A DNA stretch of 64,000 nt from Mytilus californianus. Its lineage: Eukaryota. Of the stretch, positions 18,714 through 59,207 are shown in pieces. The DNA lies in NCBI RefSeq assembly GCF_021869535.1, contig NW_026262582.1, forward strand, positions 71,858,001 through 71,922,000. Reading direction: 5' to 3'. The position numbers and the translations under genes were made by a program. Each line of letters opens with the position of its first letter. Positions within the stretch are counted from its first letter, which is position 1. The notes below the pieces were generated by a model. It ran no database searches. It was not told the DNA's origin and was given only the letters and a program-made list of their open reading frames with translations.

Positions 18714-19027
18714 TTACTGCACATCATATGTCTTCTTCAAGAATGTTAAGCCTTCTGCCGCTTTAACATGTCTCAATGTAACCATTAATCGATAAATAGT
18801 TGGTTTAACCCGGTCAGTTTTTTTCCAGTTTTTCCATTTCACGAGGAGATCGTGTATTTGACCATTTAAGTCTCTTGGAAAGTTGTGCATAGTTTCTTTG
18901 ATGTTGCCAATACTTAAAACCAGTTCTACTCCGAGATGAAACACGCAATCGCCTATTAGCTTCTTTTTTGTCAAACTATTTATGACAATTTCTGACGGAA
19001 TATCTTGCAGGCGAGCATTGGCTTTTT
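18714..19027 (-). CDS. ROCO terminal exon: death-fold domain 2 + stop
   Basis: tttgttatag|AA AAA GCC; EKANARLQDIPSEIVINSLTKKKLIGDCVFHLGVELVLSIGNIKETMHNFPRDLNGQIHDLLVKWK...PTIYRLMVTLRHV...TYDVQ*. Confidence 0.85.
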
Positions 19028-22000
19028 CTATAACAAATTAAGTAAAACTTAATTATGAATAGAAGTAACATGATAATTATCAAATTGAATACTTCAATAC
19101 GGTAAAATAAAGGACTACAAAAAGCATGTGAGTAATACTGTTCATCTCATTTTAAAAACTATAGGCTATTTGTTTTATATACTTTAATCAAGGAAATAAT
19201 TAACACCATGCTTGAACATATATATATGTAAGTAAATGTAAAACATTAACTATCAAACATTTTAATTGATGAACATACCAGCCAAACCATGGTCTTCTCT
19301 GTGTACCTGTAATATCAAAATAAAGAATTTCGACAAATACATTATTGTTTATGAAAAATCAACAATCCAGTTTAAAACCCATCAATTGGATAAGGGATGC
19401 ATTTTTAATGTTTTTATGCTTTGATAATAGGAATTATTTTGCTTTATATTTTTTCATTTATATTGACAATGTTTTTTTGTTATTCAATAGTTCTACGTTT
19501 ACAAATATAACTGGTGTTAAATATTACAAAAATACTAATCCAGCGGAATAAGCATTGCTTTACCCTGACGTGTTTTTTTAATTATTCTTACTTTCAGAAA
19601 CTTAAAGAACATTGATCTGTTGGCAGATCTATTTATTTGATTTTGCATTCCTTCGTAAGGCACTCATACTCGAGTAATTTAAAAAAAAAACGACATTCAT
19701 GTAAGAAACCTGTGCTCCTTGGATATCAACAACTAGATTATTGTGCCAATTTATACCTCGGATATTTTTTTGTATACATATTTATTACGGATGTTATTAA
19801 ATTCGTTTCGAATGAAAAATAATTGTTACACGTGGAGTTTTTTTCCTGCCAAAAAGAAATTATATAATAAAGCGTTACTCTTCAGAATTATTCAACAACT
19901 GATATAGTCGTTTCTTGGTACAGACATTTTCTCATGTTTACAATGGTGGACTAAACTTGGTTTGATATCTAGCTAAAATTCGTATAAAATTACATTATTA
20001 ACAACGATGTGCGAACAAAATAAACATACATAATAGGTTAAAATGTTAAAAATAGATACACAGCAGTCAACATTGTGTTATAATCAAAATCACTTATATA
20101 ACAAACAAAAATGTAACAAAGAAACACAAAAAGGTATATAGACGAAGAACGTTAGCAAAAATTAACGGAATAATTTCATAGTGGTACCTGACAAAGATAG
20201 TGTGGCTTCTCTATAGCTGTCAGAGCTTTTAGCAATTTCTCAAATGTTGCCATCACTTGGCTGCTTTCAGATGTATCTCTCCAATCAAAGAGTCCCATCA
20301 GCATAAAATCCATGGGGTTTGAGAAATAACGAAAATTTAAGTTGTCGTAATCGGATTTTGACATACCAAGCTGAATGAAGAAGTTGTAGTAATCACCAAT
20401 CCCAATTATTTTTGCTAGCTGTACAAAATGCTGATCATTTGGTTTCAGTAGCAGGGTTTCGTGTCTAAGACCTTGAAGAATAATGTAGATAATTACTTTA
20501 CCATGTTTTCAATTCCTTTAGTGGGAATTTGAACTTCAGCAACTGTTTTGGGATGTATATTTTTCTGTACGGTAGCGTTTTTGTCAATTGTTGCAATTAA
20601 TGCGGTCACTTTTTAAGCATAAAGCAAAAGCCGCCGCATTACGGTTGTCATGCGCAGCTGTTTCATTGGCAAGAATACTACTTCTCTATAACTCTTAATG
20701 TAATCAATAATGAATTGAGTCACGTTAAACGTTATGAAGGTTAGAATTAGGTGTGTGCAAACATTCATGCCAAACAAGTTGATATTAAATGTTATTAATA
20801 TACCCATAAAAAATGCTAGGAATAAAATCTAATAAGCAAGACGCGCGTTTCGAGGACCCAAATTATCGAATGGTTAAAACGCCAATCTTCGAAATCACCG
20901 AAATTAACATTTCACATCTTTGGAATTATTTTTAAAGAGATTAAGTTTTTTCATAGATTCAGTTATTTTTATCGCATTTTTTTTCATTTGCTAAATATTT
21001 CAGTTCAGTGCATTGTCTTTCGTATGATATTCATCAAGTTTTCTTTTATGTTTTAGTTACGTTTTATGTTGTCCATATGATTGAGACAAAACGGTAAATG
21101 TATCAAAAGAAACACAAACATTTTAGTCAAATATTGCATGCATACTTATTTTACAATTTTCAAAAAAGTCTTATCTTAATTCCTATTGTATTTTATTCAT
21201 AATCTGCAAAGAGAACTGAAAAAAAACAACATTAAAAGATGCGCTCTACTTTTTGTAAAAATATGCCATTAAAATAAGCATGAATATATGTATTTATAAA
21301 ATTTCCTACTCCTAATGTTAACCTACATTTCATCAAGTACATAAATTAATAAAGGAAACTTGATCAGAACTATATAATGCACAAACCATGAAAAACATAA
21401 GCTTTGTTTTTCAATGATTGTTTCTTTACCTGTGTTCCTTTTATTTTGTTTTTGGTGTGAATTAATATATCTTATATTTTTGTACAATCATTTATTTATA
21501 CCATTACCTTTACAGCCTTGTTCGCAATGCTCTTTATTCTACAAATAGAAATATAGTTTTAGTCTGTCTGGATAATTTTATAAATGAATATTTTGTTACA
21601 AGTCATAAATGATACTAGGCTTTTAATTTGCAAGATTTCTTATCGACTTGATCAGACTTATCAGTGACACTCGAGTATTCAAATTTTGCAAACCAAATGA
21701 AGTACGATGTTGAAGAGGAGTGCAACCGGGAAATTCTTATAGATGTTCCAAAAAACAGCAAGAAATCTAGTTATTTGTGTGTTTCTTTCAATTTGTATAT
21801 GTGTTTTGTCCTTGTTTACCTTTTTAATGCGTTGTCTTTTCCTCTTGAATAATAATTTCCAGAAATAAAAGTATGTATTTTTCTTTCCTTTTATTTACTG
21901 TATAATATAAACAGATTTTTACGTAAATATATTAACCAAATATGCAATGTTAAAGACATTAATAATCAGGAGGTCTTTGCTTTCGTTGTCGCTGTTGCAG

Positions 22001-25000
22001 AAAACAATCCAAGGCCATCATTGGGTCGGACAGCAATAAATATTGCACCCGAGGACGGGTTTTAGATGACCTCAAACAAAAAAAGTATACCCAGTTCAAT
22101 AAAAATTGACGTCACACTAGACTCCAAAACATATACATTTAAAATTTAGAAAAAATACAAGACTAACAAATCCAGAGGCTCTAGACATATGACCTGGTCA
22201 ATGAGTTGATCAATATTAATTCCACAATATGCCATCTTTAATGATCTGAAAATAGTTTTGTTACTATCTTCATTTTAAAAGAGTCTGAACATGTACTCAT
22301 AACGTATTTTAGTAATCACGATAACATGTTGTGCAAAACTCGCACATGGTAAAACATTTATACGACTAATTTAAAGATCCTGAGATCACCCCTAGTTTTT
22401 GATGGGATTCGTATTGCTTAGTCTTTTTTTTTTCTATGTTGTGTTTTGTGTACTACTGTCTGTCTGTTTGTCATTTTCTTTTTTAGCCATGGCGTTGTCA
22501 GTTAATTCTCGATTTGACCTGCTTTTGACTGTCTTAAAATTAAACTGACAGTTTTGACTTTTTGACATTTTACACAACAGTTCTACATAATTTCAATTAA
22601 CATAATCATCATATTCAAATAACTGATTCTTCGAAACATTTTGATTGTAATTTTGTTTTCTGCAAATTATTTGAATCCTTTTTCTGTAATGAAAGTTATC
22701 TGTACCAAGTCAGGAATATGACAGTTGTTGTCCAATCGTTTGATGTGTTTGAGCTTTTGATTTTGTCATTCGATTAGGGACTTTACGTTTTGGATTTTCC
22801 TCGGAGTTCAGTATTTACTTTTTACTAAGGCTTTTTTTATCGATAAACTGTGATGAAACGAATACATTTGTAATTATGTTTATTTACATTTTGGTTTTAT
22901 CATTTTATGTTGAAAATTAATATTTATAAATGCTGTGCGTTCGGAAAACTTTTCTCAATGAACTTTCATTAGTTTTCGTAATTACACAGTTCGAAAGCCA
23001 ATGATTCTTAAACACGTGAATGGATGGCGTGTGGGTTAGATTATCAGAGTCCGTTAAACTGTATTTTATCAAAATGGTACAATTTGCCTTTGAAATCTAC
23101 TATGCAATACGATCAAATCAATTGAAACCAGGTACAACAGTTGGTCAAAAGAATATGTAAGTTTATATTAATCTAACACAAATTTACATTTACGTAAAAG
23201 TTGAAAAGAATACTAACCTTATCAAAAATCCAATTCAGAAGACATTTTGTTTCATGTTTTTTCCCGTTTTTGCATCTCCAATGCGTTGTTGTTTTGATTT
23301 CAGACATAGGTATCAAACACATGTCCCCCTTGCACATTACTCCAACTTCTATTTCAAAAAGATTTAACGTAGTTTGATGATCTTGTGTGCCAAAACAACG
23401 ACGATAAAACTGGAGAATTCGACCTAATGCTAATGTCAGACATTCTTGTGTGGTTGTCGCAAGATCTGGTGAGATGAGCTCCTTTGAAACTGAATTTATA
23501 AGGTATGCAACAATTCTTTGTCCTTGAACATGAATTTGTAGTTCATTTTTGCTATCAACATCCATTACTGCAGCTTGAAAGTAGAGACAAAACCGGCTTT
23601 TGACGATTTTCAAAGGCCAGATGCTTATTGAAGCACCAATAACCTTAAAGGACAAAGCAGAAGGAACCACTGTCTCCTTCAGACGATAAGCTATGCATAA
23701 TGTTCGGTCATCTGTTGCATTCTGTAGCATTGTTTTCGGGATCTTTTCCTTGACGATGCAGGGTACCAAGAATAAATCCGAAGCTTTGTCCATTTCAGTA
23801 AATCGTTTTGGTTCGACAAGGATATCAAGGTGAAGGAGGACATGAACCATATATTCTTTGGTTCTCTCATCTGTCAAAATATCTTTGAAAGCTGGTTGCG
23901 ACCAAAGCGTAAACAGGTCTTTTTTCTTTAGAACTCCGGTTGAAGATAAATTTTGAAGTATGTTTCGAATCGGTCCCATCTTCGGCCAAAATATCATGTC
24001 TGTAATGAAAGCTCTTAATATATTGACCATAGCTGTTGGCTGAACAACAATGAAATCTCTTAAAGGAAGATCATCGAAATACAATAACTTTCCTATAGAG
24101 TGTTGAACCAGTAAGAAATCTTCAATTCTTCTTTTACTTAGCGCTAATTCATTATTTGACTGGTTCATTTCCATAAGCCTTTCTTTGGTTATCAACTTTA
24201 CCCCATCTGCTCTCAGTTTTGTTAACTGTAAGTCTAAAGGTACCCAAATAATGGGCATTCTTTGCCCCCATGTTGACTGCTGGAAGGCGATATCAACTAA
24301 TTTATCCTTTAATCGATTTATATTCAAATCATCTGCGTCTGTTGCATTGATGAAATAGACTTTGTCATACATAATATGCTCATGAAGTTTGTGTGAGGAA
24401 AATAGTTCTGTAAGCTCCTCCTTGAATGTAATGGCTAGTATTTCTATCTCATCCTGTCAATTACATCAAACCCAATGTCGTCAGTTAATTTCATACGTTT
24501 TATTATACATTTGCATATTATGTTCCTTAATGCAGTGCAATAATTGTAAAAATATATAGTATACTCCTAGACTGTATTTTTGATACATGACATATTGAAA
24601 AGAATGTTGGCGATAAAAAACTTTACTGGCTGCTTAAGATCAAATTATAATTATTTTCCTATGACATTATCTCGTCTGACATTGTAAAATTATTCATTAC
24701 ACTAACAGGAGTATTTGCGACAGCAATTTCAGTATTAAGAAAATTCGAAATTTTAGTAGAATAGAATACAAAACAGATAGTATAAGCCTTAGGCATTGTT
24801 TATTAACTAATTGATAATTACTTATACTTAAAGATTATCTAACATTTGTAGATGCCGTGACTTTATTGTGTATCCTTTAAAAAGAATCAAATTAATGTCC
24901 TTTGTCGTAAAATTTAAATCATGCTTCAACATTGTATTATTGTGAGACAAAATGTTTTCCTGTGAAAAAAATTCAACTATAATGAATTTCTCAGGAAATA

Positions 25001-28000
25001 TGTTCTGGGAGAACTTTTTTCAAAGATAATTTCTATATAATCTGTTCCATCTCTATGAAATAACCTGGTGAAATAAGTTCTGGGTTTGTGAGATTTGTTC
25101 CTCACCTGACGTAATAAGTTCTGAGTTTGTGAGATTTGTTCCTTACCTGGTGAAATAAGTTCCTTGTTTGTGAAATATGTTCAACTGGTTATGCAAGTTA
25201 TCTTATATACTGAGCATGTGTCATCAGTGAGTTAAAATTTATTATTCAAGTACATTAAAAAAACATGTATTATACTGATAATGTAATAAATAAAAAGTGT
25301 AAACATCCAATTTGGATCCTGTGGAGTATGGAAAATGTTTAATTACATACTCCATAAAAAAAATATACCAAAATAACATTTATGAGCTAGATAAAGGTAG
25401 AATAAAAAAGCACTTTGAACTTTTTGAACACGTTATAGTTAAAGTCATGTGAAACTTAAAATTAAAAAAAAGGATGCATATAGTTTTGTTCAACCTAAAT
25501 GGCTATTTTGTATTATAAAACTTATGTAAATATACTTTTTTTCTGAAGAAAATTGTCCAAATTTAAAAGGTATATACTTTTTATTTAATTGTTTGCTTCA
25601 GATCACTTTAAAGATAATCATTTGTGCTATTTTGAAAAGGACAAAGTGACCAATCAATTATATTAAAAGACATGTAGAAACAAAAGACAAACTCTTTTGA
25701 AAATGTCCATTATCTTAGTACATGTATGACCAAAACACCCATGACAGTTAACAGGAAACAAAACGGAATACCACATAAAACACAAACAAAACAAGTAAGA
25801 AACATTATCATCTCTTGCATTTCTTATCTTTATCATAGAGTTACAGTCATTCCTTCAATATCAAATGTGCCCCGAGCAAGCACAAAACAGCATCCAGCTT
25901 GCATTTTAATTCAAGTGTAACTAGAAAATGTTTTGTTTTGCAATATGGTGCAAAGGTAATTATTTTCTGTGAAATAGAGTTCCAGCTAAACTTCTATTAA
26001 TTTCTATCAAATATATTCGTTCAGAACTTACATTACATAAACTTATTGTACAAGACTTTAAATATTGGAACAAAATTAATGGAGCTATGATTTTTTTTTA
26101 ATGAACTTATTTGACATTTGGTGAAAAAATTAGTTCATGAACAAATTTAACAGTGCTGAAGCATATTTCTTATGGAACATTATAATCTTAATCACTATAA
26201 ACACTAACAAATTGTCAACACAATAAAATTGCATACAACCAAAGGAAATACGAAAAATGAAATACAAGAATACAAAAAATGATAATTGCACAATAACACA
26301 ATGGCGGGATATATAAGTACCTAGCCACGGCAAAGGACATTTCCAAAAACGGATCAAACAGTAAAAGTAAATAATTTTTACAAAGAAAAATACAAGTACA
26401 ATATAAGACATAATTAAGATGATAAACAACGTCAGTACCCTGAATCTATACATCAAGACCATCATGTATTATTTCTTAATTTGATATTAAAAATTTAGAA
26501 ACAAGGTCTTGTTATCTTCAGCTTTTTTTTTAGAAAAAAGACGAGAAATCTTTTGACATAACCCTGGTTCCTTAACTTTCTGCTCAGACACTGGTAACGT
26601 TTTATAAAGTCTGAGTAGCAGCTGCAACTTATTGAATACCGAATAAGTTGGGAAATTCATATGCCATATGCAGATGATGGTTGTTCATTGCTACTTAGGT
26701 CGAGGACATTGATTTTCAATGGAAAGAACATTATTAACATATCTGATAACAAAAACGGTACCAATTTTTCTGCTACAGATGCGCACTTCGACAATCAATG
26801 CTTGAGGTTGACAGTTTTGAAAATACAAAGCTTTTTGAAAATATGAAGAGCTTTAAACCAAAGAACAAAAAAAAAAGAACCAAAACGTATAGTCAAAGCT
26901 TGGCCATGAAACAGAGCTTTGCATGAAGGAGATATATTCCGTAATTTTTAAAAACATTCAAAATTATGTAACAGCATATTTTGATAACACATAATATTCA
27001 TGCAAGTACCAAATTAGAATGTGAAATCAAATGAATACCAATAAAACAAAATAAACACTTTGTCATTCATTTCTTGAATTTGAATATGAAAAACAATTAA
27101 AAAGTTAAGATTCTTTTATAGGTCTAAACATAATACAATGACCTTTCGCAGATCAATAGCAGAGGAAATCATACATTTTGTAATTGAAAAATACATAGAA
27201 ACATTTTTTGGCAGATTATAGACTGTTTAGAATGTCATCAGACAATATCAATTTAAATAAAGATTTCCTCGAATGTATAGACACAAAGTAAACAAAACAA
27301 ACAAAAATAATGTTATAAAGACAGTGTCGACAAATAACAGGACAATACTCCGTTTAATAACACGAACAAAGCTAAAACAAAATTTATACAAAATAACAAG
27401 AAATTTACTCATTTTAAAATCTTATATCTTTGAAATACAAGTTGAATTCTTAGCATAATGTTTTTGAAAACCAATACATACCTTGGTGAAACTATCGCTA
27501 TGTGTGGCAGCAAACACAATTCTCGGCATTTTATCGTCACTTTTGTTAGAATAAGTCAATACTGAATTAATCCAATGTTCCAGAATCGCTGCAAAATTAT
27601 TGAATTATTTCAAGTTTGTAAATTAATTAAAGCGCGAGTAATAAACCGACTTTCAAATCTCCATAATCTCATAGAATGTCACACATCAAGGAAACAACAT
27701 CAGGAGAGCCGTAGATTAGCATCGGACTACGATCACAAAGTTCCTGGTTCGATCCCCGCTGGTTCCTGGTTCGATCGGTAGAAATTTTCAGGGACTGAAT
27801 TTTCGGCTCTCCCTTGAAACCATCTGCGAGTATGGTCTTGAGTAACGATGATAATCAGTCGGAAGGGGACGATAAATGGCTGACATTGCACTAAGAGAGT
27901 GCCATATCTCTGCACGTAAAAGACACCCTTGTAGATTTCGAAAAAAAAGCAGGCTAATGTCGCTACAAGACAGCGCTCTAACCCGCAAAGTTGAAAGGGA

Positions 28001-31000
28001 TAGATATAAGTTGCAAAATCTTATTTTCCATTCCACTATAGATAAATATGTTTAAACTAAGGAAACAAACAAAAATTTAGGGAGTCAGACTGGCTATGTG
28101 TACAACGTAAGCGTCATCATAATTAACACTTTGATAAAATGTCATAATAGAGACTTGAAATTAATCGGTAAAATTACACATTGGACTACTATACTGGTAT
28201 CCAAAGATCTGGCAGCTAATTAAAAACACCAGATTTATAGTTTTGTCGCCAGGCACATGTTTTGTTTACACTTAACACATCACTGACACTTGAAGCGAAA
28301 TAGTTCTCAGACCACAAAAACATGTCAGTAGCACGTTACTTCCCAAATACGTTGTATATATCGACCAATTCGAGATAATGATTTAAAAAACTTTGTAGTG
28401 TTTATTTCCGACGATCTTTTCAATAGTCATGTAAATACGATGGAAACGTGTTCGCGTTAGGTGCACCTTGTTGTTTTTAGAGTCCGTAAAGTGCAAAAAA
28501 CTTCTAAATAACTTTTGTAACAAAAAATAATATAATATATGAAAATAGTGGAATTAAATTTTTGAGAGTGAAAACAATTCTTCGTAAGTGATTGATGAAT
28601 TACATGATTTTGATGGGCCTTTTGATTTTGTTGACAGTTTTGATAGTTTTGACTTTTCATTTCTTTACACTAAACTTCACACAATCATAAAAAGGTTTTC
28701 CAATTTAATTAAAGGGTCATTGGTATATTTGAATGCAAATATAACTGCTGCATTTAAAGCCTTCTTCTCTAATGACAAAGGTAAATATGCTAGAGGCCCA
28801 CCTCCCGTTCTGGAATTTTCTCGCTGCATTGAAGACACATTGATGACCTTCGGCTATTATAAGCTCTTTCCCTATTGTTAGTTTTCTATTTTTGGACGGA
28901 GATATTTCTTTTTACCACCAAATGGTGTTTATCTTTCACAACTCTTTCGCTATGCTCGTGTCTGTTGTAATGTTTTGGATTTCAACGTATTTTATATATT
29001 ACTGACTGTTGAATTATTAAGTCAGGGATTTCATTACCACAAACGTCTAAATTCAGAAGCCTGTATTCAGTGGTTATCGTTTGTTACTGTGTAGTATATT
29101 TGTTTTTAGTTCATTATTTTGCAAGTAAATTATGCCGTTAGTTTTATGCTTTTAATTATTTTACATTTGTCATTCTGGGGTATTTTATAGCTGACTCTGT
29201 ATGCGGTTTTGGTGTTGCTCATTGTTTAAGGCCGTACAGTGACTTTTAGTTGTTAATTTCGGTGTCATTTTGGTCTCTTGTGGCGAGTTGCCTCAGTGAC
29301 AATCATACCACATTTTCTTATTTTTATATAAAGCATAAACAACATTAGTGATAATGATATAAATGCAAAATTATGAGAATGTTATTGATGATTTTGGAGT
29401 AGATCATTCGATTTTTTTTTCAGAATCCGCATCTGATTCACATCACTTTTGTATATACCTTTTCACGATGATTGTGAATGCCATATTTTACCGTACAAAT
29501 AATTGTTAGAATGCCTTTAAAATGATGTGGACGATCTTGACAACTCAGCAATATATCATTCTTGTGAAGTTTTGGTAACCGATATTCAGATGTAGCTTAA
29601 GTCCCATCAAACCACTTATAGACACGATTAGAACTGCATCTAGTGTATATGTTGGATGAGAGTTTATTGCGACAAAGGTTTTACACAATTGTAATTGTTG
29701 ATATTATCGCATCTGTGAATTGATAAAATACCTAGAGCATCAGTTTGTCGATGCATACGTAGCTTCGGATAAATTTCGAAACAAGACATCATAGTTTTAT
29801 TAGCGATATGGTGTACTCAATACGGGAACTTCTGTAGAATTATAAATTTTCTTTAAAAAAAAACGCAATAAGAATGCATATGGTTCGCCTTCTGTGGATT
29901 CCTTTATTTTCAAGGGTATCAATTTTCAAGGATTGAAGCAAAAATGCATTTTTGAGGATACTTGGTTCCGTGGTTTTGCCAATCTTAGCATACAACGCCT
30001 ATAGAAAATGTGTAATTCGTTGAACATTTAAATTTGAGGTTCCCCATTACCAATGAATTCCACAAAAAGTGGTATCCAACGTATAATAATGAGTTCACAG
30101 TATATGGTTATTCATTCTTTCGTTAAGTTTTCGTCGTTTATCATGAGTGACTACCAAAGCGTACACTGAAGATTTCCGTATGTTTGAAAAATTCGTTTTA
30201 AGGATTAACATTCCGTAAAGAATTTGATTTGAAATTGTGTTGTCCGTTAAGCATGTAACACACCACTTATGTACTCCGCCTGGTGTTTTGGAAAGTTTAT
30301 GTATAGTACCAAGTATTAACTTGATGATTTTAAAGCACATATAAGACACTGTGTCTAAGGAAACAACCTCTTCCAGAAAAGATAACGTGTTTACGTGGAT
30401 TAGCATGATTTCGTATTCCTTTGAATGACACGAACCTATGTTACTATATATTTGTATTTAAGTTTCAATTCAAAAAGATATTACTTCTTTTAAGTTTAAT
30501 GCACTCACATAATTTGAGCTTAATCATACACCATTTGAAAGCATATCCTCTGTACTTTCTTATTAGCCCGATCGTCAAATATTCAAACGGTGCAATTTCT
30601 ATCAAATCGAAACGAAAGATCAAGGACGAACATTTTCTTCTTTTACAAGTCGTCAGCATTTTTGCATACTTTGTCTTCTAAATATTAAAACCATGTGTGG
30701 GACAATGACACACTTTTAGAACAAAGACTTCAATTATTTAACTCATTTTGAAGTTTTCCTAGATATTCTAGTGAAAATTATAGAATTGAGTGAAAACCTA
30801 CAAATTTGACTGTGATTCAATTGTTAATCACAAAAAAACAACCAAATAACATATTTCATTTAGTACTAAGGACCAATTTACTGCAATCACCCTTGTTACT
30901 AATTGTCAAGCCAATCATAACAACCCATACAGTTACACAAAATTACGCCATCTGCAAAAGAATAGTATTTTAGCTGTTATACTTTAAAAATTGTATGCAA

Positions 31001-34000
31001 TCAGTATAAGGTTGGAAAAAACAGCTTTAGAAAAGCCACAAGAATAATACACTCGGGATTTATGTTTTGAAAGGGAATTTGGTGAGCCAAACATAGAAAT
31101 ATGTAGTTTGATAACAAGCCTGTTGAAAAATCCTCTGTGTTATCTTGTTTTTTTTTGTTATTAAGAAACAAAGGACTTTATATATAAATACTTTGCTGAC
31201 CCCCAAAAAGCTACATACATAATTATACAAATATATAGTTAGTCAGTTAATTAATAATCAGTCGTATTTCAAAATTAAAAAAAAAATGTTTTCCTTGTTG
31301 CTTAAACTGCATCGTGAATTTCCGAAGAAAAAAATCTATAATAATATTCTAAACACTGAAATGATCGGAGTAAGAAACCCTATAATACTCCTTATCCTCA
31401 ATAGTCATTCGACTTTTAGTGAAAGACTTCTATGTCACAACTAACATACGGCTTTATTATATATAATTCGAAAGCTGATTATGTGTCCTTTCTGTTTGGA
31501 CGGTCGTATATCTTTCGAACGGTGCAACTTTTGTCAAATCAAAGTTAAAGGTCAGGAATGAAAATGCCTGATTTTCGAAAAAATGAAAGCGGGGAGGTAA
31601 TATTGCAAATGAGACAACTATCAACCAAATTTCAAATCTAGCGGATGTAAATAATTACAGGCAACCGTAAGGCCTTCACGCACGAGGAAACCGATATCAA
31701 ATAGACGGCTATAAAAAGCACCGACATGAAAAAGATGAAAAGGTCAATAAAGAAAAATAACGACTTAATATATAACAAAACAATTAACGAAAAACAAATA
31801 TGACAGACTGAACCGACGACAAACACTGAACTACAGGCTCCGGACTTGGGACAGGAACTTATAGAATGTGGTTTGAGTTTATAACGATTTTATTTGCTCA
31901 TAGATACAAAAAGGATCGGACACAAGTTTAACCAACTTATGAAGTCTTCTCCTTTACATAATATTACAATAACAATTATACAGAGCATGCACAGTTCAGT
32001 ATATATATATTAAAGGTAATAGTAAAATGAGGCATTTGCACAGTCAGAGAAGAAAAAGAAAGAAAGAAAAAAAAAAAAAGCCTAACGCAATTAACAAGGA
32101 AAAGGATAGAGAATTGAGAAAAAGAAAAGAAAAGAAAAAATATAAAGAAAAGAAAAAATATTAAATAATACAAATATAAAGAATAAAAATAAATGAAATT
32201 CTGTGGACACGATGTTTTTTGTTCAGTCATATCTTATTTGATTATACTACAAGGAATCTTTTTGATTTTTTTATATATCTAAAGACTTCTTTAAAGATTT
32301 CACAGTTTTCCTCGTATGTTAAAGTTTGGCTAGAATGTGGTTTAACATGATTGTGAGCGTTCAACTCTCCCTTTAATCTTGGAAAGTGGTGTAACTGCAC
32401 AACATAAGACAAAAGTTAATACATGAGTAAAAAAGGCTTAACTCATCAGATCGATACATACCTGTAAGAACAACAAATATAAACACAGACTGGACGTGGT
32501 TGGGTGTTTATCCATCCTCATCCCTTACAACAAAAAGGACACAAAGTACAGATCTGAGACAACTCGCAGTTTCTGACTACTACTTAACAGGCAAAAACTT
32601 ACATAAAAAAAATCATGAATCTAAGGTAAATTATATCAATCAATCATAAAATAGAGATTGGAAATGGGGAATGTGTCAGAGAGACAAACAAACAGCCGAA
32701 GGCCACCAATGGGTCTTCAACACAGCGATAAAATCCCGCTTCCGAAAGTGATTTAGTTAAGCGAAAATGGACGTCACACTTAACTGGAAGACATATAAAT
32801 GAACTAAAATTAGAAAAATATAGAAGACTAGCAAAGGCATCTGTCTCCTGACGTGGCACAGGCGCAAACAGGTGGCGGGGTTTACACATCCAGCATCTAA
32901 TGAATTAAATGTGAAGACGCCCATAACAAACAGAGAATAACATGACCTTGTGCAATGCAAATGAATGAAGGATCGACAGATTGTAGAACTATGAACGTGC
33001 ATATGTGTGAGAAAAAAAATGTATGATTTTATTAAATGATAAAAAAAATATTTATACCAACAAAAGCAATCTTAAGAGATCTCTTTTGGCATTGCACAAG
33101 ATCTTATTACAGTGTTGAATTGGTAACCTGTTACACTAATGTTATAATAATATATAGATATAAGAAGATGTGTTATGAGTACGGTCTTCAACACATAGCT
33201 TGGCTCAGACCTAACAGCAAGCTTTAAAGGACCCGACAAATTGCTTGTGTAAAACCATTCAAACGGGAAAACCAACGGTCTTATCCATATAAAAAAAAGA
33301 GAAACGAGAAACACTTATGAACCACATCAACAAACGACAACTACTGAACATCAGATTCCTGACTTAGGACAGGTGCAACCAATTATATATTGTCTAAAAT
33401 AAAACCGGCGCCAATAATGACTTCGAATCTTGGCGCATTTGTTATGTCGTAAGTTGTTATTATAAGCTAAAGGATATAACAGACGTCTGTGCTTTGGAAA
33501 TACAATTGAACATGTGAAGGTGATATGTACTTATTATGCAAATTTGAGCGAAATGAACAAGTTTAAAGTATGAACCATACTAGTTCATTTTTATAGCAAT
33601 ATATATGTATTGATATACTTCATAATAGTAATTGAAAAAAAATATGTTTATCTTAATGAAAAATGTAAATAACTTACATGCTGCTGTAACGTCTCCTTGT
33701 GGATATTCTTCCAGTTCTGTATAAAGGCCTTTACGTCCATCAAAAAACAGAATGAACGTTCCCCTGTGCTGGATGAATAACTGGTGTGTCATATCAAATG
33801 ATCTTTGTCCTCCAAAATCGACTAAATCTGACGGTGCTATGTCCATCATGTAAGACTTCTTCTTGATTTTTTCTAATATGTCATCTTGAATAGATTTTGC
33901 AGTATAAACTGATTGTTTTTGAAAGTCTTGCATTTTGTTAAGATCAGGTTTTGGTGGCACTTTTTGGCGTCCAACAGTAAAGGTCTGTCTAGATGTTGGA

Positions 34001-34916
34001 ATCTGTTTTCTGTCCTGTTGTTTGTGATGCACTGGATCAATCTTTGGTGATTTTGTAAATGCTTGCTCAGTCTGGCTCATCTTTTGTAATGGAATAGTAT
34101 CGACTTTCGTATTATCTTCATTGTCAGTCAGATGCATCTGGTAAACATCAGACAGCCCATGTTGTTCATTCATTTCAGGATTTCCAAGTAGCAGTTTCGT
34201 TAAAACATCACCACTACCTGATTATTTTACAAACACTCAAATTAGTACAATACAGCTCATTATCCATTCATTTATCGATGAACTAGACGTACTTTGTTTG
34301 TTTGCAATGTTGCAAAAATACGATTATAACATTGAAGCGTTTTTAATCTAAAAATGGTATCATGTGTGTTTATACAAATGTTTGTGTGAGCAATCATTTC
34401 GCATAAAGCGATTTGAATTCAATTAAATAAAATAGATAAAGATAAGAAATACTAATAGTCTAGTAAAGTTTCCGATTCATTCAAGTTATGTTTAGCTTTA
34501 AACACATGTGTAAATATTGATATCGTATATACTATTTGACGAGTCACCATAAAAGAAACAAGAGTTCTTAGTCTTGCTGATGGAAACACTTTCTAAATGA
34601 TATATCCTAAAAACGGTGTTAATCGAAAAAAAAAAAAAAAACACCAGATAATTGATTTGTACTTACCTTTTTTCAGTGGAATCATTTTTCTATGTTTCAA
34701 ATCGATTCCGTTTCTACCAAAATGAATTATTAGCCCATCAGTTGAAATCCAGATCTTTTGAATTTTTTCACCAATTAAAATACTTGCTAAAGAAGATTTT
34801 CCTATGTTACAAGGTCCAGCCAAATACACCCTGTTTTCATAGGAAGCAAATGTTCCGAGAGAAACTAGATCCTGGAAATCATTTGTATTTAGGTGGCTTA
34901 GTTGTGTCAGTATGTT
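18714..34916 (-). CDS. ROCO-family gene (ROC GTPase + COR + two death-fold domains), 8 coding exons reconstructed; 5' end open
   Basis: Exons 34667-34916, 33678-34217, 27482-27588, 23218-24453, 21508-21538, 20188-20471, 19279-19306 and 18714-19027 all have AG/GT boundaries and phases that match in series (0-1-1-0-0-1-0-1). They sum to 2790 nt with a single terminal stop. ROC motifs: GPCNIGKS (G1), STDG (G2), DFGGQ (G3), ATHSD (G4). Resembles bivalve ROCO proteins rather than a true LRRK2 orthologue (no kinase or LRR seen). Confidence 0.9.
19279..19306 (-). CDS. ROCO linker micro-exon VHREDHGLA
   Basis: gatattacag|GTACACAGAGAAGACCATGGTTTGGCTG|gtatgt; 28 nt, phase 0 to 1 as required. Confidence 0.78.
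20188..20471 (-). CDS. ROCO exon: death-fold domain 1
   Basis: cttcaag|GT CTT AGA; GLRHETLLLKPNDQHFVQLAKIIGIGDYYNFFIQLGMSKSDY...LFDWRD...TFEKLLKALTAIEKPHYLCQ|gtacca. Death-domain pattern (P.D..L..LA..IG....L...LG...W...T...L..AL); 284 nt. Confidence 0.85.
21508..21538 (-). CDS. ROCO linker micro-exon NKEHCEQGCK(G)
   Basis: ctatttgtag|AATAAAGAGCATTGCGAACAAGGCTGTAAAG|gtaatg; 31 nt. Supplies exactly the phase 0 to 1 transition required. Confidence 0.8.
23218..24453 (-). CDS. ROCO exon: end of ROC (G5 region) + COR domain
   Basis: ttgacag|GAT GAG ATA; 412 open codons including WGQRMPIIWVPL, GKLLYF, FIVVQP and LFLVPC motifs typical of COR; donor GAT AAG|gttagt; phase 0 to 0. Confidence 0.93.
25063..25183. 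repeat. Three 41-bp tandem units
   Basis: ACCTG...AATAAGTTC...TTTGTGA units start at 25063, 25104 and 25145. Confidence 0.85.
26590..27020 (-). mobile_element. Degenerate retrozyme-like repeat (second family)
   Basis: The minus strand carries ATTGATTGTCGAAGTGCGCATCTG (~26737-26760), homologous to the 8102 HHR but without the CTGATGA core. Extent approximate. Confidence 0.45.
27482..27588 (-). CDS. ROCO exon: ROC G4 region (not in ORF track)
   Basis: ttttgcag|CG ATT CTG...; (S)ILEHWINSVLTYSNKSDDKMPRIVFAATHSDSFTK|gtatgt; 107 nt, phase 1 to 0. Confidence 0.9.
27703..28060 (+). mobile_element. tRNA-derived SINE (tRNA-Arg-like head, V-domain-like centre)
   Basis: The head has a B-box GGTTCGATCCC (27746-27756), locally duplicated, and CGGACTACG resembling a tRNA-Arg(ACG) anticodon arm. 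Internal CTGCACGTAAAAGACACCC is V-domain-like. Tail TTTAAACTAA. Confidence 0.7.
28230..28360 (-). mobile_element. Degenerate retrozyme/HHR relic
   Basis: Minus strand TTCAAGTGTCAGTGATGTGTTAAGTGTAAACAAAACATGTGCCTGGCGACAAAACTATAAATCTGG aligns by eye with the 6460-6540 HHR junction, with a mutated core. Confidence 0.45.
28590..28790 (+). mobile_element. Penelope-like RT fragment
   Basis: FVDSFDSFDFSFLYTKL...KRFSNLIK...FKAFFSNDKGKY, the SFDFSTLYT motif of PLE RTs. Confidence 0.65.
29380..29800 (-). mobile_element. Penelope-like RT N-terminal fragment
   Basis: Minus strand LPKLHK...YIA...KVYTKSDVNQMRILKK, resembling YWIPKLHK...VYSRSGVNQMWILKNS; degenerate. Confidence 0.6.
29892..30100. mobile_element. 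Related Tc1/mariner-type MITE
   Basis: CTGTGGATTCCTTTATTTTCAAGGGTATCAATTTTC...ATAATGAGTTCACAG|TA. Confidence 0.65.
32645..32890 (+). repeat. Retro-tail family B (same as the tail of the 47265-48790 PLE)
   Basis: TAAAATAGAGATTGGAAATGGGGAATGTGTCAGAGAGACAA...GAAGGCCACCAATGGGTCTTCAA matches 47265-47360; other copies at ~8270-8420 and ~28800-28900. Confidence 0.75.
33678..34217 (-). CDS. ROCO exon: ROC insertion + G3 (DFGGQ)
   Basis: Acceptor aatcag|GT AGT GGT; ends ...PSDLVDFGGQRSFDMTHQLFIQHRGTFILFFDG...DVTAA T|gtaagt; 540 nt, phase 1 to 1. Confidence 0.9.
34667..34916 (-). CDS. ROCO exon: start of ROC domain (P-loop, G2)
   Basis: Acceptor ...aaatatcag|AAC ATA CTG; NILTQLSHLNTNDFQDLVSLGTFASYENRVYLAGPCNIGKSSLASILIGEKIQKIWISTDG...LKK; donor G|gtaagt; 250 nt, phase 0 to 1. 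Confidence 0.88.
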
Positions 34917-37900
34917 CTGATATTTATTAAAAAAAAATGAAATACTAGTAATAGTAAGGAAACACAATTTGTCAGAGAATAACAAACACGCCCATCATTA
35001 AAGAAAAAAGATGAACATGCAATCATCAGCAGACACAATCATGTTCACCTAAATATAAAGCAGCAAATAAGGGAAAGGAGAAAAATGAACAGAAAGTTAA
35101 AAATAGTTCATACAAGGGAAATGAACAATCAAACAAATACAATGGAAATAATATATCACCAGTACGTGAGATCACTGTCAATGAAGAAATAAAGAGAAGA
35201 ATATAAAGAAAGTGTTTGTTCAGTCGTTGGTTTGAGCAGTCCTACAGTTGCAATGTTCAGTGCCAAGTTAGGAGTATGGAAGTTGTTATCAATAGTGCGT
35301 TTCTATGTATGTTGGCGTTTGTGTTTGTTGGACTTCAGTGTTCCTGTTGTTGCTTTGTTTTCCTCTTAAAGTTGATGTGTTTCCCGTGGTTAAAGTTACT
35401 TTTTTTAATGGATTTATGACTTTTGAACACCGGTTTATCCTGCTGCATCTATTTGCAAAAAGGGAATTCAACAAGCGGACGAAAAGCAATGCTGACGAAG
35501 GTCAAAACTTTGAAGCTGATTTATTTGTTTTCTCATTCCATATCTTCAAAAGGAAAATATCAATATCATAGACTAATGGCAAAACGGAGAATTTCTTTCC
35601 ACCGTGTGCGTAAACATCCAAATGTTCAACGGGTAATATTCGAACATTTGAAAGGGTAGGCACAACACATTAACGCTTTAGCGTCTGAAAAACTGAACAT
35701 AGAGCAGGAGGCTGTAGCCACACATTAAAATTATAAGCTACAGTATGATAAGAATAATGTATATCTAGTACAGTTATACAGTAGGCATGACATAAGAACA
35801 TACGGAACATGGAAAAAGGCAGATGTTTGGTTCGATATTTATCCACCAGTAACATACTACCACAAAATTCTTTCGTACAGAATGTTATGATCAGATTTTT
35901 TATTCTCCATAGTTCTGATCTAACATTGATGTTTCAGTTTTCTTGGTATAGTGTGCCTATTTCTAGTAATCTCTATACTTGTCAAAGTCCTATGGTTCTT
36001 ACGTTTCTTGTCTGTAAGTGTCAACATTTTAAATTTCCTTTGTGCATTCTTAGAAAATAATGGGGTCACTTCTAAATAAAATACAGATTTCGTCAGATAA
36101 TTTTCTAAACGCATGATTAGCGTCAAAAGTTGTATGGTGAACACATCAATGACATTTTGTTTATAATTTAATACTGCTTTGAAAACACTGCATCCATGGT
36201 TCGATGGACAGCACATTAATGATATCATCAAGTGGTTATAATTATGATGGAATCTGTAGTATAATTTGAAAGATTATTTGGAAACTAGATCAAAAGCCTT
36301 TTTCATGTTTCCATCATTTGGTCTATCACATGTTCAACACTAAAGGATAGTTGGTCTACACGGCTTTGTAAATAGTTGGTTTGGATATCGAGCTTGATAT
36401 GGTATTTATTCTTCACAAGAGAGTTCCACTGCTCAAGATAATACATATGCACAAAGATCATTCCGTCTATATCAACTAACATCGTTGAACACTTTAGACA
36501 TCTGATGAACACGTATTATTGGCGTTTAGTAAACAGTGACTGTCAGTATCAAAGGAGATAGTTTTACAAACTGCAAAAGGTTGAAATAAGAAACAAGGTA
36601 TTTTAATAGTTTACGCCGATTGGTGTATTATAATCTAAACAAAACTTCATCATTAAATTTCAACGTTATTTTTATATCTTGAATGACATACTCAATAGAC
36701 ATTATCAGAAGTAGCGGAAGCCTTCTATGTTGAAATATGAATACATGCGAAATATCCTTTGCTCATTACGTCTCCCATAGAGACTCAACGTAATGAGAGT
36801 TAATAAAAGTTTATCACAGTTTACATCAGAACCCAGTTTACATACCAAATAATTATTTGTTTGCGTACTATTCGAGAAACCAATCACAAAACATTTATTC
36901 ATGGTTTGATTCTGTAATTCTGTCATTGTCTTTGTCTTTGTTATCGATTGATATATGGTAATCATATCGTGACGTTTAGACAAACAATCGTCGCAAAGCA
37001 TCTTGAACTCTTCCTTTTTCTGATAACACATTGATTGCGATGGATCCGGTCGGTTCATACGTCTTATCGATGAGCGAGGTTGGCGTTTACTTTGCAGATA
37101 GTTCACACACTCCTAAATTCAATCGTAGTTTTGAACATCGATAAAATCGTATTCATTAATGTTCTTTGTTCCCAAAGGTTAGCAGAATAGAATGAGATGC
37201 TTCGAATTGGAACTGATCTTGCGCGTTGGTGTCTTGTCGATTATTGAGTACGAAAGGTTGAACTCCCTGAAGCAAATTATAAACAATGGAAGGAAACATA
37301 TCAGAACATTTGTGTTTGCTGATGTAAAAAATCTGCCCTTCGCATTTTAAAATACCTATTGATTGAGAATCAATTTTGAAAGACAGATTCTATTGCATTT
37401 TTGTTAACCAGATCGATACAAAATCTTCTGAGAAGTACTTTTACTCATGGGTGTCAATTTTCGTGGTGTGAGCAAAAGTAATATGTTCGTGGGTTCTTAA
37501 ATTCGTGAAGTTTATTTTTTAGTTTTTTCTGCAAAAAAATAGACTGAAGAACTCGAACCCATCAAAGATTTGTGAAAATAATCAATTGCTGTTTTCTATT
37601 GATTTTCGGGATATTGAAAAATAAGGTTTTTCTTTCAAGTACTTGTTCGTTTTTTATCATTACTGACAACATTCATCACATTTTCAACGAAATGATTGCC
37701 TTCGGTAATACGCTGAATTATCTATGCTTACAAACTTTATTGATTGAAAAAATAATTGCAAAGATAACATTATTAACTGTAATATTAACAAAAATAAAAG
37801 AGAATTTTTTCTAAAATATTATATATAAAAATATGTCAATTCTAATACACTTAACTAAATCCATCAACACCAAATGATATAAAAACAGTTGTTTCTTTTA

Positions 37901-38229
37901 TTAAAGAGTCATTAGAACTGAGGAAAGGAGACCAATAACTGTTTTTAACATGTATTCTATTAATGTCCAGTTTTTCTGATGTTTGTTTTGTCTATGTATT
38001 TGCTATGACCAAAATTGGTTTTTGTTTGTTTCGCAAATAAAGAATTTACTATTTCCACACTGACGTAGAAGTTAAAAATTTAAGGTCATCGTACGGCCGG
38101 CAACAATGAGCAAAACCAACGCGTTATAATAAGCTATAGAATGAAATGATAAATGTAACACAATTAAACGAGAAAACATGAAAAACCAAGCTCCTGATGT
38201 ATGTACAACAGTAAACGAAAACAAAAATA

Positions 38230-38431
38230 CTGTGGATTCATTATTATTCGTGGGATATCAATTTTCGTGGATTTTGTTGGTATAGGTGAATCACGAATTT
38301 CAATATTCGACAAAGTACACATTTTCTTTAGGCCTGTATGCAAAGTTTGGCAAATAACGAAATCAAATATTAACGAAAATACAATTTGTCTCAATCCAAG
38401 AAAATTGGTACCCAAATAAATGAATTCACAG
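38230..38431. mobile_element. Tc1/mariner-type MITE (TA TSD) nested in a repeat tail
   Basis: TA|CTGTGGATTCATT...AATGAATTCACAG|TA; it splits the AAACGAAAA...CATCAACAAACGACAACCACTGAA repeat. Confidence 0.75.
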
Positions 38432-40287
38432 TACATCAACAAACGACAACCACTGAATTACAGATTCCGATCTTTTAGTAAAATAGAAAGTTAGAATTGA
38501 AAAAATGCTATAAATATTGTCGTTTGTCAAAACTTCATATAATTCCATAAAGACTTGACAAAATTATTCATGTCTAAAGAAACTTAAACAACAGATTGAA
38601 CCTAAATGTTAACGATATCTCCACAAACTATATACGACGTATTAACAAATGCGACACCTTTATTTAACTTAAACTAAAGTTTAAGGAATACTTTGGGATC
38701 GTGTGAGGACCAAAATATCAGTTCTATGAAAGTAAATACTGCGAATTTATTTATGGTCTATTATTAATACGGCCTATTGATATCCATCTTTTATTTTGTT
38801 ACATTGCGCTCTCTGATATACATTTTTACCTGGCACTATCTTGAACTGCAACTATTTAAAATATATGTTGCACAGATGAAGACGGATAGGTTCCAACTGT
38901 CGTCATTAACATCCCTTCCTCTTTTCCTCGTAATTGACGTACCGAATTAGACTTTTCACTGAATTTTAACTGACATGAACAACACGACGAGTGTCACGCG
39001 TGAGGTATGATCAGCTAATCTTCCCAGGGCATCCAAGATCCCTGCAGGTTTTTAGAGAGGTTTGAATTGCTCAGTCGTACCGGTCTTTTTATTTTAGCAA
39101 ATATCAAATGATTATACAAAACAAACATAGGTTAGGGGAGGGTTCAGCGCTCCCATACATATTTGACCCCGCCACATTCTTTATATGCATTTCGAAAGCC
39201 AGGAGCTTTTAGGTCAGAAATTGTCATTTGTTCATGTCTGTTATATCTTTTTTTCGGAAATTATTTTGTTATAAATTAGGCTTAAATTGTTTCATATTTT
39301 CGTGTCGGGTTCTTTAATAGCCAACTCTACAGTATGTTGAAGGTAAATGGTTGCCTAAAGCTGCTTACATCAACTTAATTTGTACTTTGTTGTATATTTT
39401 TTCTCATTGGTAACTTATACCGCATCTATTTTTATTAAGATCTATATTGTGTTATTGTATACTGTAAATTTGTTTTGTCTTTTTTGTCGTTTTCCGTTGT
39501 TTTTTTTTTTACATTGCATCGCCTTTTTTTCTTTTTTGGACTTATGAGAATAAATTTTCACTTTGTATATTGCATCTCTCGTTTGTAATAAACTGGAATA
39601 AGTTTATTGCTATATGGTCGGGTTGTTGTCTCTTTGACAATTTCCAAATTTTTATTCTCAATTTCATATAAATGATGGTATTAACAAATTTTGAAAAAAA
39701 AGTAACGGACGGAACCGTTTGTCAGAGGACCTTCATTGTACGTTGGAAAATTTTAATTTTTTAATGTACTTTTTTCTTTCGTTTCACTGCAGGTCCCCCA
39801 TAATGAAGCTATGTCCCTCGATCCGCTTTTTGAAAATCCGAGTGAAAGCTCTTGATACACGATAGACAACACAGTAACTGTCTGTGTGTTGTATATTCTA
39901 TTTTTGATATGTAATTTGAAATGTTTTCCGTCGTACATGTTTCATTGAGACTACTTTACAAGTATATCTATTTGAGATTCTCACCGAATTATATCAATAT
40001 AACGGAACTATAATCAACTAGAATACAAGTGGGAGGTTTATTTAGCTAAACAACCAGGTTTAACCCAGTAATTTTTTCGGAAAATGTCTGTACCAAGTCT
40101 TGAATATTTGCAGTTGTTCTTCATTTGTTCTGTTAATTTTGTCAGTTTTCTCCTTTTTTAATTTGCCTTGGCGGTCGATATTTTTTAAATAGTTTTTATT
40201 TTATTCTCACAATTACAGTAAACATAAATATTCATTTCGTTTTATAAAAAATGTCAGCAAAAACACACAAACAAAACATTTTCTTAC

Positions 40288-40931
40288 CTCAGACGATGAA
40301 ATCTGAATGTACTGGTATGGTTGATGTCCACATACAACTGCGCCTTTCGCCACTGCTATATCAGGTTCTTCCGGTATACTGATGTTTTTATTCGAGAACC
40401 TTTCTCTCACAGCATCTTGAACTACAATACATTGGGAGAAACCGCCAACCATGATGACATCCGTTATTTTATATGAATCTTTATAATCCTCAAACACGTT
40501 TTCCATCAGGTAAATGATCTTGTCAGTTGTTGGCTTGAATAAGTTGTGGAGTATATCAGAAGAAATTTGTATTCTACGTCCGTTAAACTTAATGGCATCG
40601 TCGTATATAGAACTATTAGTTACATCATATACATCCTTATTGTGGTATTCTTGGCATAAACTATCGAGTTCATTGATTGGAATTCGTATAAATTTAGCAT
40701 GTTTTCCATTAACTTTCCGTTTTATGGTTTCGATTTCGCTTTCAAGACCAAAATGGCCAGATGGGACTTCCATTCTTAGTGATGTCATCACTTGTGAACC
40801 AAATATGTTAACTAACAATTCTATAAAGCTGTTATTAACTGATGTGCCACCGCAATCATTGCCGGTGGTCCGATATTTTTCTACTAATTGATTACCATCT
40901 TTCTTGAGGACTGTTATGTTAGAACCACAAC
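40288..40931 (-). CDS. HSPA12: HSPA12-like copy 2, exon equivalent to copy 1 exon 4
   Basis: catgatattag|GT TGT GGT TCT; NDCGGTSVN, FKPTTDKI, VIMVGGFSQ, EEPDIAVAKGAVVCGHQP; ends SSSE|gtaaga; 644 nt, phase 1 to 0. Confidence 0.88.
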
Positions 40932-41580
40932 CTAATATCATGAAATAGTATTTGAATAAACAAAAAATCATCAGTAGGCCATACATTCAATATGATATCA
41001 GCAGTTGCATTTAATTCAACAGTTATGCACTAATTTATCGTTTTTTTTATTATTTGTTTAGCAACGAATATTTTTTTTAAACATTCGTCATTATACATAG
41101 TTGGACCTCTGTTTGTTGAAATGTTTTGTATGTGTTTCTTAGTGAATTGCTGAGTATTTATTAACAGACATTTTTTATAACACACACCAACAAACAAATG
41201 GATCTCATATTATTTTCACTTATATATAAGAAATTTTTGGTTTCACAGTTATGCGACAGCAACTTTAATAAAAAAAAATATCCAAACCCAATCCGAATGA
41301 CAAATATGGTTTTCTTCAATTGAGGTTTGAGCTCATAACGAATTAACTATAATCGGAAAGAAAACAAACAAAATTGTGGATCAAACACACGATTCATCGT
41401 AGTCGAATAAACACTGTACTACAGTTAACTAAAATATGAATCGCATTATTATAAATTAAATTATGCAAATGTCTATTTTACAAAATGAACACAAGACTCC
41501 GAATCACTAGTTGAAAAAAAACCCACATAAATATCAAAACTCGTGAGTGTAGATAAATGTCATATTGAACCTCAAAGTAC

Positions 41581-41718
41581 CTCCAAGATGAAGAACCATA
41601 TATTCAGTGCCGTCTTTTAGTTTTTGGTAGTGGTCTTGATCTGGTAAATGATGACAATACGTGAATGCGGCTTCCGCTTCTGTCAAAAACATTACCTGAT
41701 CAGAGGGTATTCCTGCCT
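41581..41718 (-). CDS. HSPA12: HSPA12-like copy 2, exon equivalent to copy 1 exon 3 (not in ORF track)
   Basis: tttatttctttag|GCA GGA ATA CCC; AGIPSDQVMFLTEAEAAFTYCHHLPDQDHYQKLKDGTEYMVLHLG G|gtactt. Boundaries are accurate to about 2 nt. Confidence 0.85.
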
Positions 41719-58989: not shown

Positions 58990-59207
58990 GGCCAAATAAA
59001 ATAATATGTGTGTTTCCTATTACAACATCTTTGAAAAAAATAGGGTAGGTAGGTAGGGAATTTTTTTTATTTTACAATTTTTTTTTTACATTGAGTCTAT
59101 ATGGGAGAGAAATTTTGATTTAACAGTGCTTATTGAAAAATACCCACAAAACTTTAAGGTAGGCTATTTCTTCGCTAAAAATATAGGGTAAGTAGGGAAA
59201 TTTGGCC
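58990..59207. mobile_element. Second copy of the same Tourist-like MITE
   Basis: GGCCAAA...TTTGGCC termini, flanks TAA/TTA, shared internal AAATAGGGTAGGTAGGTAGGG and TTTACATTGAGTCTAT. Confidence 0.7.

Follow-up and report, generated by a model that had tools for sequence, protein, structure and literature searches.

ROCO proteins, in which a Roc GTPase domain is joined to a COR domain, are well known for the varied modules that they carry at the N-terminus. The very large expansions of HSPA12 genes in bivalves are commonly taken to supply additional chaperone capacity under stress. In plants, NLR immune receptors with integrated decoy or sensor domains combine a switch NTPase and a signalling domain with a further domain derived from a host protein, which may itself be a target of pathogens. 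Human ROCO proteins have been studied for their links to chaperones (PMC3995007), and the portion of the account by Kaur, Iyer, Burroughs and Aravind (2021, eLife, PMC8195603) on which we draw lists HSP70 domains and B-boxes among the variable modules of the DED-TRADD-N proteins expanded in oysters. Here we describe a locus of the mussel Mytilus californianus in which exons for part of an HSPA12-type, Hsp70-like nucleotide-binding domain (NBD) stand ahead of, and in frame with, exons for Roc, COR and two predicted death domains. It lies in a stretch of 64,000 nucleotides (RefSeq assembly GCF_021869535.1, contig NW_026262582.1, positions 71,858,001 to 71,922,000), which we call the window and whose first letter is position 1. 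Our assessment is that the locus is probably one unit of a tandem array belonging to a Mytilus ROCO family, in which a constant body receives a head that is swapped at a fixed phase-0 boundary.

Gene model and domain content

The window consists of animal DNA rich in A and T (G+C about 32%), the best protein matches returned by a homologue search all come from Mytilus, and all features treated here are on the minus strand. Exon boundaries were placed with the closest relative, the 989-aa protein P0001 of M. edulis, as guide, which gave a model of ten exons running from 41716 to 18714 with AG/GT at each boundary (Table 1). The 3570 nt of the model make up 1189 codons and a TAA stop with no internal stop, which bears out the single uninterrupted frame of about 1190 aa, in the order HSP70-type, Roc, COR, death and death, that had been proposed in the initial annotation. 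Chance is excluded as its source because, by our own estimate, an exon that stays open for 214 codons at 32% G+C would arise with a probability of about 5e-8. Two of the ten exons are micro-exons of 31 and 28 nt, inferred because two joins failed to close in frame without them. The peptide of the former, as N-K-x-H-C-D-x-N-C-K, is conserved in 15 paralogues, and V-x-REDH, homologous to the peptide of the latter, was found in P0001 and P0002. Exons of 31 and 28 nt would easily be overlooked by homology-free gene finders.

The C-terminal body is well conserved. The G1, G3 and G4 motifs of Roc are intact and in order, Roc exon 1 is 80-87% identical to Mytilus ROCO paralogues, and the COR exon is 74-77% identical to proteins annotated as COR-containing; a search of 1.84 billion representatives gave 676 relatives of this exon, with P0001 (74% identity) at the top. 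Pfam scores of the single exons stay under the model cut-offs: Roc on exon 2 reaches 19.9 bits against a 27-bit cut-off, COR-A 32.5 against 35.3, and Death on the second death exon 17.7 against 22.6, with no direct match on the first death exon. Full-length paralogues do reach the Roc cut-off, and paralogues that are 65-90% identical pass the COR and Death thresholds, P0285 with two Pfam Death stretches. A PDB sequence search with the COR exon gave nothing informative. With its Roc motifs and a COR adjoining them on the C-terminal side, the window gene belongs to the Roc-COR proteins; it is not a ROCO of the DAPK1-like layout, as neither the kinase nor the ankyrin repeats that stand N-terminal of Roc there were matched in the window.

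The N-terminal part is the second of two NBD modules in the window and is referred to as copy 2. To delimit it we used a profile of 590 positions built from 15 standalone HSPA12-like proteins, in which the NBD ends near position 445. Copy 2 spans only positions 184-443, the C-terminal 58% or so of the NBD, with exon 3 covering positions 184-237 (E 3.8e-8) and exon 4 positions 231-443 (E 1e-51). Exon 4 also matches Pfam HSP70 (E 4.7e-7), and its AlphaFold model (mean predicted local distance difference test score 89.8) has the NBDs of BiP, Hsp70 and DnaK as top Foldseek matches with probability 1.0. A profile of 26 exon-4 modules aligns to the last part of solved Hsp70 NBDs and ends near Hsc70 residue 374-383, which is the end of the NBD. 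Copy 2 has lobe II and the adenosine motif, with a confidently predicted fold, and it is not a complete two-lobed NBD: phosphate-1 is absent, and phosphate-2 reads H-L-G-G-C-G-S-N. The initial annotation had taken copy 2 for an NBD without a substrate-binding domain, of which the second part stands, since the HSPA12 C-terminal region (profile positions 445-590) had no significant match in the window for either copy by tblastn and profile search (best E about 6), while only half of the NBD is there. Neither copy therefore has the full HSPA12 layout of an NBD followed by a C-terminal DUF8340 region of about 150 residues; both end at a splice donor.

The junction between the NBD and Roc exons

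The initial annotation had linked the NBD module to the Roc exons through a phase-0 donor at 40288 and a phase-0 acceptor at 34916, and both sites are as claimed. The NBD exon ends ...TCT GAG followed by GTAAGA, and the acceptor, which has a T-rich tract, reads ...ATATCAG/AAC ATA CTG (here and below a slash within a sequence marks the splice site). We could also confirm that the first Roc exon has no convincing start of its own, with no in-frame Met ahead of the P-loop and the first Met lying after it, in ...HRKMIPL.

The 5.4-kb interval between the two sites (34917-40287) was not matched by any of about 285 family proteins, and a tblastn search with family proteins found no ankyrin, kinase or other family N-terminal exon in the window outside the known exons. 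Only two mini open reading frames of the form ATG...GTRAG occur in the interval; as independent ATG exons inside the proposed intron they are weak candidates, neither resembling the exon tails of the family. A separate open reading frame at 36708-37112, whose Cys/His pattern had suggested a B-box relic, was dropped for want of a Pfam match. Because no C-terminal exon, no alternative N-terminal module and no Roc start was found in the window, what is left is an NBD module without a 3' end and a ROCO body without a 5' end, whose phases are compatible. We infer that the splice from 40288 to 34916 is probably in use at this locus.

Related fusion models and loci in Mytilus

An HSPA12-type NBD ahead of Roc-COR-death is present in 11 public Mytilus models from four species: P0168, P0173, P0225, P0226, P0236 and P0284 of M. 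edulis, P0161 and P0245 of M. galloprovincialis, P0179 and P0182 of M. coruscus, and P0285 of M. californianus. The RefSeq entries among the fusion models are XP_071127296.1, XP_071124204.1 and XP_052077535.1, and the public accessions CAG2244432.1, CAG2245214.1, CAC5383011.1 and VDI45415.1 have the NBD-first order as well. Between the window model and P0168, one unbroken alignment (1-1189 versus 192-1267) extends through the junction. The NBD of P0284 is complete (profile positions 5-446), and the RefSeq models P0285 and P0236 carry partial NBDs. No NBD occurs in the top 150 representatives of the COR exon at 50% clustering, which by itself would speak against the fusion; the fusions appear in the closer, 90%-clustered set.

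Detection of the NBD in these proteins depends strongly on the model used. Pfam HSP70 (PF00012) misses it in P0284, P0285, P0168, P0226 and P0182 at E 0.01, whereas the 15-protein HSPA12 profile finds it in all five with E from 1e-36 to 1e-111; in precomputed domain lists, too, the NBDs of the fusion models are not flagged above the Pfam threshold. This blind spot is probably the reason that the architecture had escaped notice, and domain-architecture surveys miss these NBDs because the Pfam HSP70 model does not flag them.

Across paralogues the boundary of the Roc exon is fixed, reading ...S-E/S-I-L-T-K-L... or ...S-D/P-I-L-T-K-L..., and the modules ahead of it vary: ankyrin repeats, an NBD ending ...K-G-A-V-L-x-G..., a death domain or a three-residue stub. 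The NBDs of different units are 24-58% identical and the ROCO bodies 67-77%. Varied modules at one fixed Roc boundary are what characterises a family in which the body is constant and the head exchangeable.

Two genomic loci show the same layout as the window. In the M. californianus locus of XP_052077535.1 (L003; JAKFGE010000009.1, 4114-37035), exon 4 ends ...QPN/GTAAGT and is followed by a 6.9-kb intron, a TAG acceptor and Roc exon 1; in the M. edulis locus of P0173 (L004; CAJPWZ010002737.1) the corresponding intron is 8.9 kb, and in both loci the join is phase 0 with GT/AG. NBD exons 2 and 3 are present in L003, 28 kb upstream of exon 4. In this locus the RefSeq model begins within exon 3, at the ATG of M-V-I-N-L-G-G, only 19 coding nt before the 28-kb intron, and encodes a truncated NBD; a start so placed is an unlikely ab initio choice and suggests that it has spliced-read support. 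Because exons 3 and 4 are so far apart in L003, exons 1-2 of copy 2 could lie past the edge of the window. At 35704-43097 of L004, the COR exon and both death exons are each split across two frames, which reflects either decay or indel errors of the assembly. The proposal of a single NBD-Roc-COR-death-death gene is consequently supported in its order by the eleven models and by these two loci, and has to be amended in its head, of which only half an NBD is present here.

Copy 1 and the origin of the splice donor

The other NBD module of the window, copy 1, has four exons and an ATG of its own at 11115, with an in-frame stop upstream of the ATG. It ends at the homologous phase-0 donor, CAG/GTGAGA (4332), without a C-terminal domain, and it probably heads another NBD-ROCO unit, of which the Roc exons would be located off the window, past coordinate 1. 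The position of the donor is also kept in four genomic paralogues from Logan, in which ...(S/T/C)-E is followed by V-R, that is, by GAG/GTAAGA read through. The tails produced by such read-through differ in length (24, 47 and 14 codons) and so are not conserved coding sequence. In the standalone HSPA12 gene P0262, the boundaries of exons 1-3 are common with those of the cassette, and exon 4 runs uninterrupted into the C-terminal region; as P0262 has no intron there, the donor at the end of the NBD is derived. The exon structure indicates that DNA duplication of an HSPA12 gene with introns, and not retroposition, gave rise to the cassette.

One Logan contig (L001; SRR26849179, 1729 nt) has exons 3 and 4 contiguous and then continues, at the homologous GAG, with ATGAAAGC..., the downstream part coding for a coiled coil and for zinc fingers that resemble B-boxes. 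The contig carries two in-frame stops and may represent a transcribed pseudogene or a retrocopy. It nevertheless descends from an RNA in which the homologous donor was spliced to a foreign module, and this suggests that the NBD cassette is also attached to TRIM-like genes. The NBD of L001 groups with the two copies of the window in a quick tree without support values, which we take as a hint only.

Upstream of the gene, four short open frames on the minus strand (59123-63719) have in common a stretch of 5-7 prolines with similar surroundings, and these look like copies of a dispersed repeat.

Table 1. Positions of the gene model exons, the proposed intron and the other NBD module in the window
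Feature	Position	Strand	Remarks
NBD exon 3 of copy 2, HSPA12-type	41716-41581	-	136 nt; AG acceptor phase 0; end GGAG/GTACTT phase 1
NBD exon 4 of copy 2, HSPA12-type	40931-40288	-	644 nt; lobe II and NBD C-terminal helix; phase-0 donor GAG/GTAAGA
Proposed 5.4-kb intron, NBD module to first Roc exon	40287-34917	-	
Roc exon 1, G1 P-loop GPCNIGKS	34916-34667	-	phase-0 acceptor, phase-1 donor
Roc exon 2, low-complexity insert then G3 DFGGQ	34217-33678	-	Pfam Roc E 8.7e-4; tblastn with P0001
Roc exon 3, G4 THSD	27588-27482	-	
COR exon, COR-A and COR-B, 412 codons	24453-23218	-	Pfam COR-A E 9.4e-8
Micro-exon of 31 nt, NKEHCEQGCK	21538-21508	-	TAG acceptor, G/GTAATG donor; phase 0 to phase 1
First death-domain exon	20471-20188	-	74-90% identity to paralogue death-domain region
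Micro-exon of 28 nt, VHREDHGLA	19306-19279	-	phase 0 to phase 1
Second death-domain exon and TAA stop (18716-18714)	19027-18714	-	Pfam Death E 0.004; 65-77% identity to paralogues
Copy 1, NBD module	11115-4332	-	four exons, 438 codons
Copy 1 exons	11115-10822 (own ATG), 9227-9009, 7073-6938, 4996-4332	-	profile positions 11-444

Alternative explanations

Taken together, the fusion interpretation appears likely from the sequences compared, both for the family and for the window unit. Several findings weigh against it. The 5' edge of the gene model is an acceptor and not an ATG, with the first in-frame Met codons, residues 9 and 40, both encoded by exon 3. Exons 1-2 of copy 2 were not found in the window, including 41717-64000, by tblastn with 4 fusion and 12 standalone proteins or by the 15-sequence profile in six frames. 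No Logan transcript of the window locus came out of three homologue searches, of which the one with exon 4 alone gave only paralogues at 48-57% identity, and no database protein of 544-1730 aa corresponds to the locus, the best overall match being 73-77% identical; the locus may be unannotated, or it may be unexpressed or silent. Finally, the ratio of nonsynonymous to synonymous substitution rates (dN/dS) of exon 4 against its nearest paralogue is about 0.6, that is, constraint is weak. These same observations would be accounted for if the family is real and the window unit is decaying or silent, copy 2 having lost exons 1-2 and its start, so that the fusion is untranslated or an internal Met gives a ROCO protein with a vestigial half-NBD. 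Decay is also seen at related loci, in the frameshifts of L004 and the in-frame stops of L001. But a decaying gene sits poorly with ten open exons whose splice sites are all canonical over 23 kb, the two micro-exons included, and with intact Roc motifs; exons 1-2 may simply be off the window, as the 28-kb intron of L003 illustrates, and P0285 and P0236 show that a partial NBD is not peculiar to this locus. We regard decay of the window unit as unlikely, though it is the most probable of the alternatives.

The region just past the donor raises another possibility, namely that there are two genes, a truncated HSPA12-like gene polyadenylated just past 40288 and a ROCO gene with its own small ATG exon or promoter in the interval from 34.9 to 40.3 kb. 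The initial annotation had stated that copy 2 has no stop, which holds if the donor at 40288 is used; on read-through a stop follows after 24 codons, at 40215-40213, and 8 nt past it, at 40205, an AATAAA starts. A chance AATAAA is to be expected every 650 nt or so in DNA this rich in A and T. An NBD-only product made by intronic polyadenylation is possible and would also count against the fusion. Two genes would further agree with the mini open reading frames of the interval and with some paralogue models that open with a three-residue MSE stub before the Roc exon. However, such stubs resemble the tails of upstream module exons (...CMSE/ and ...FMSE/) and the mini frames do not resemble any family exon tail, the donor position is conserved across paralogues when the length of the read-through tail is not, and a lone half-NBD without the HSPA12 C-terminal domain was unmatched among the standalone proteins found. 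We therefore consider two separate genes improbable. A further alternative is a family-wide artefact of prediction, in which HSPA12-like and ROCO genes would be mere tandem neighbours merged by annotation pipelines. All 11 fusion proteins are computational models and several have obvious defects (P0284 spans 100 kb, P0168 skips Roc exon 1 and the P0173 locus is frameshifted); since predictors tend to merge adjacent exons of compatible phase, some of the fusion models may be artefacts, a further point against the fusion. For the family as a whole this explanation is very improbable, as the same join comes from several genome annotations in four species, every locus examined has an NBD without its own 3' end and Roc exons without their own 5' end, a derived donor at the end of the NBD would serve no purpose in a standalone gene, and L001 shows the homologous donor used in RNA.

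Predicted function

The phosphate-2 motif is D-x-G-G-G-T-x-D in 15 of 15 standalone HSPA12-like proteins, and in the fused modules the catalytic Asp is replaced by H or N and the Thr by G or F, the overall pattern of the fused motif being H/N...G/F...N/H. This is seen in copy 2 and in similar form in P0284, P0168 and P0285; copy 1, whose NBD is complete, yet has N and F at the two positions (N-L-G-G-G-F-A-D). Among proteins with Hsp70/actin ATPase motifs, loss of phosphate-2 predicts little or no hydrolysis. By this sequence evidence the fused NBDs are probably not ATPases. A fast-evolving, non-catalytic and well-folded head on a conserved switch and death body would fit a module for binding or sensing.

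In the mechanism that we propose for the fusion, an HSPA12-type NBD, cut exactly at its end by the derived donor, would be spliced to the first Roc exon and hence joined to the constant body of Roc GTPase, COR, two micro-exon linkers and two death domains. Translation would start at one of the Met codons of exon 3, or else more than 22 kb upstream, in NBD exons 1-2. The NBD might bind without catalysing, its target being either an Hsp70 partner or a pathogen or stress ligand, and its occupancy would alter the GTP state or the dimer of Roc-COR. The tandem death domains would thereby be exposed and could nucleate a death-fold signalling complex. A specific role of the NBD as sensor or decoy, as conceived in the initial annotation, would be a minority possibility among those open to such a module. 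The broader proposal, that HSPA12-type pseudo-ATPases are the integrated sensor or bait of mussel ROCO/death receptors, wired in cis to the GTPase switch and triggering death-domain signalling on binding an Hsp70 co-factor or a pathogen effector that targets Hsp70, and that the cassette was also lent to B-box/TRIM-like genes, is speculative and on present evidence rather unlikely to hold in full. If part of the bivalve HSPA12 expansion does consist of non-catalytic NBD cassettes on Roc-COR/death or B-box proteins, many counts and expression results for mussel "HSP70" genes would concern immune or cell-death receptors and not chaperones.

Comparison with known systems

With the integrated decoys of plant NLR receptors there is an analogy only: lineage and NTPase class are unrelated to those of the window gene, and a bait function of the NBD is a candidate role. 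The oyster DED-TRADD-N proteins share more with it, being death-fold proteins that have expanded specifically in bivalves and that combine a constant part with exchangeable modules. Their constant part is, however, a Cys-rich ectodomain, a transmembrane segment, a DED and TRADD-N, the HSP70 module is C-terminal, and Roc-COR is not among the variable modules in the portion of the account that we used (PMC8195603).

Standalone bivalve HSPA12A/B-type proteins (570-615 aa, e.g., P0262) share with the window copies the NBD family, the boundaries of exons 1-3 and the Hsp70 NBD fold. They differ in having the C-terminal region of about 150 residues (Pfam PF27033/DUF8340), whereas the window copies have a splice donor and a degenerate phosphate-2, and copy 2 lacks lobe I. 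In the part that runs from the first Roc exon to the stop, the window gene is like the kinase-less, DAPK-like Mytilus ROCO proteins with the order Ank-Roc-COR-death-death, P0001 and P0151 (M. galloprovincialis LOC143054953), in sequence as well as exon structure: identity is 67-73% over about 930 residues, and both micro-exons, both predicted death domains and the phase-0 boundary before Roc are shared. The difference lies upstream of that boundary, with N-terminal ankyrin repeats in P0001 and P0151 and an HSPA12-type NBD in the window.

The public Mytilus fusion models (XP_071127296.1 and others) have the same order of domains as the window gene and are its paralogues rather than orthologues, their NBDs being 24-40% identical to copy 2. 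No account of an HSPA12 NBD fused to Roc-COR came up in a literature search, in agreement with the earlier remark that the architecture had not been characterised, although the proteins are already public; none of the models is named or described as an Hsp70 fusion. Judged from these comparisons, the NBD would be an unreported N-terminal module of the ROCO family.

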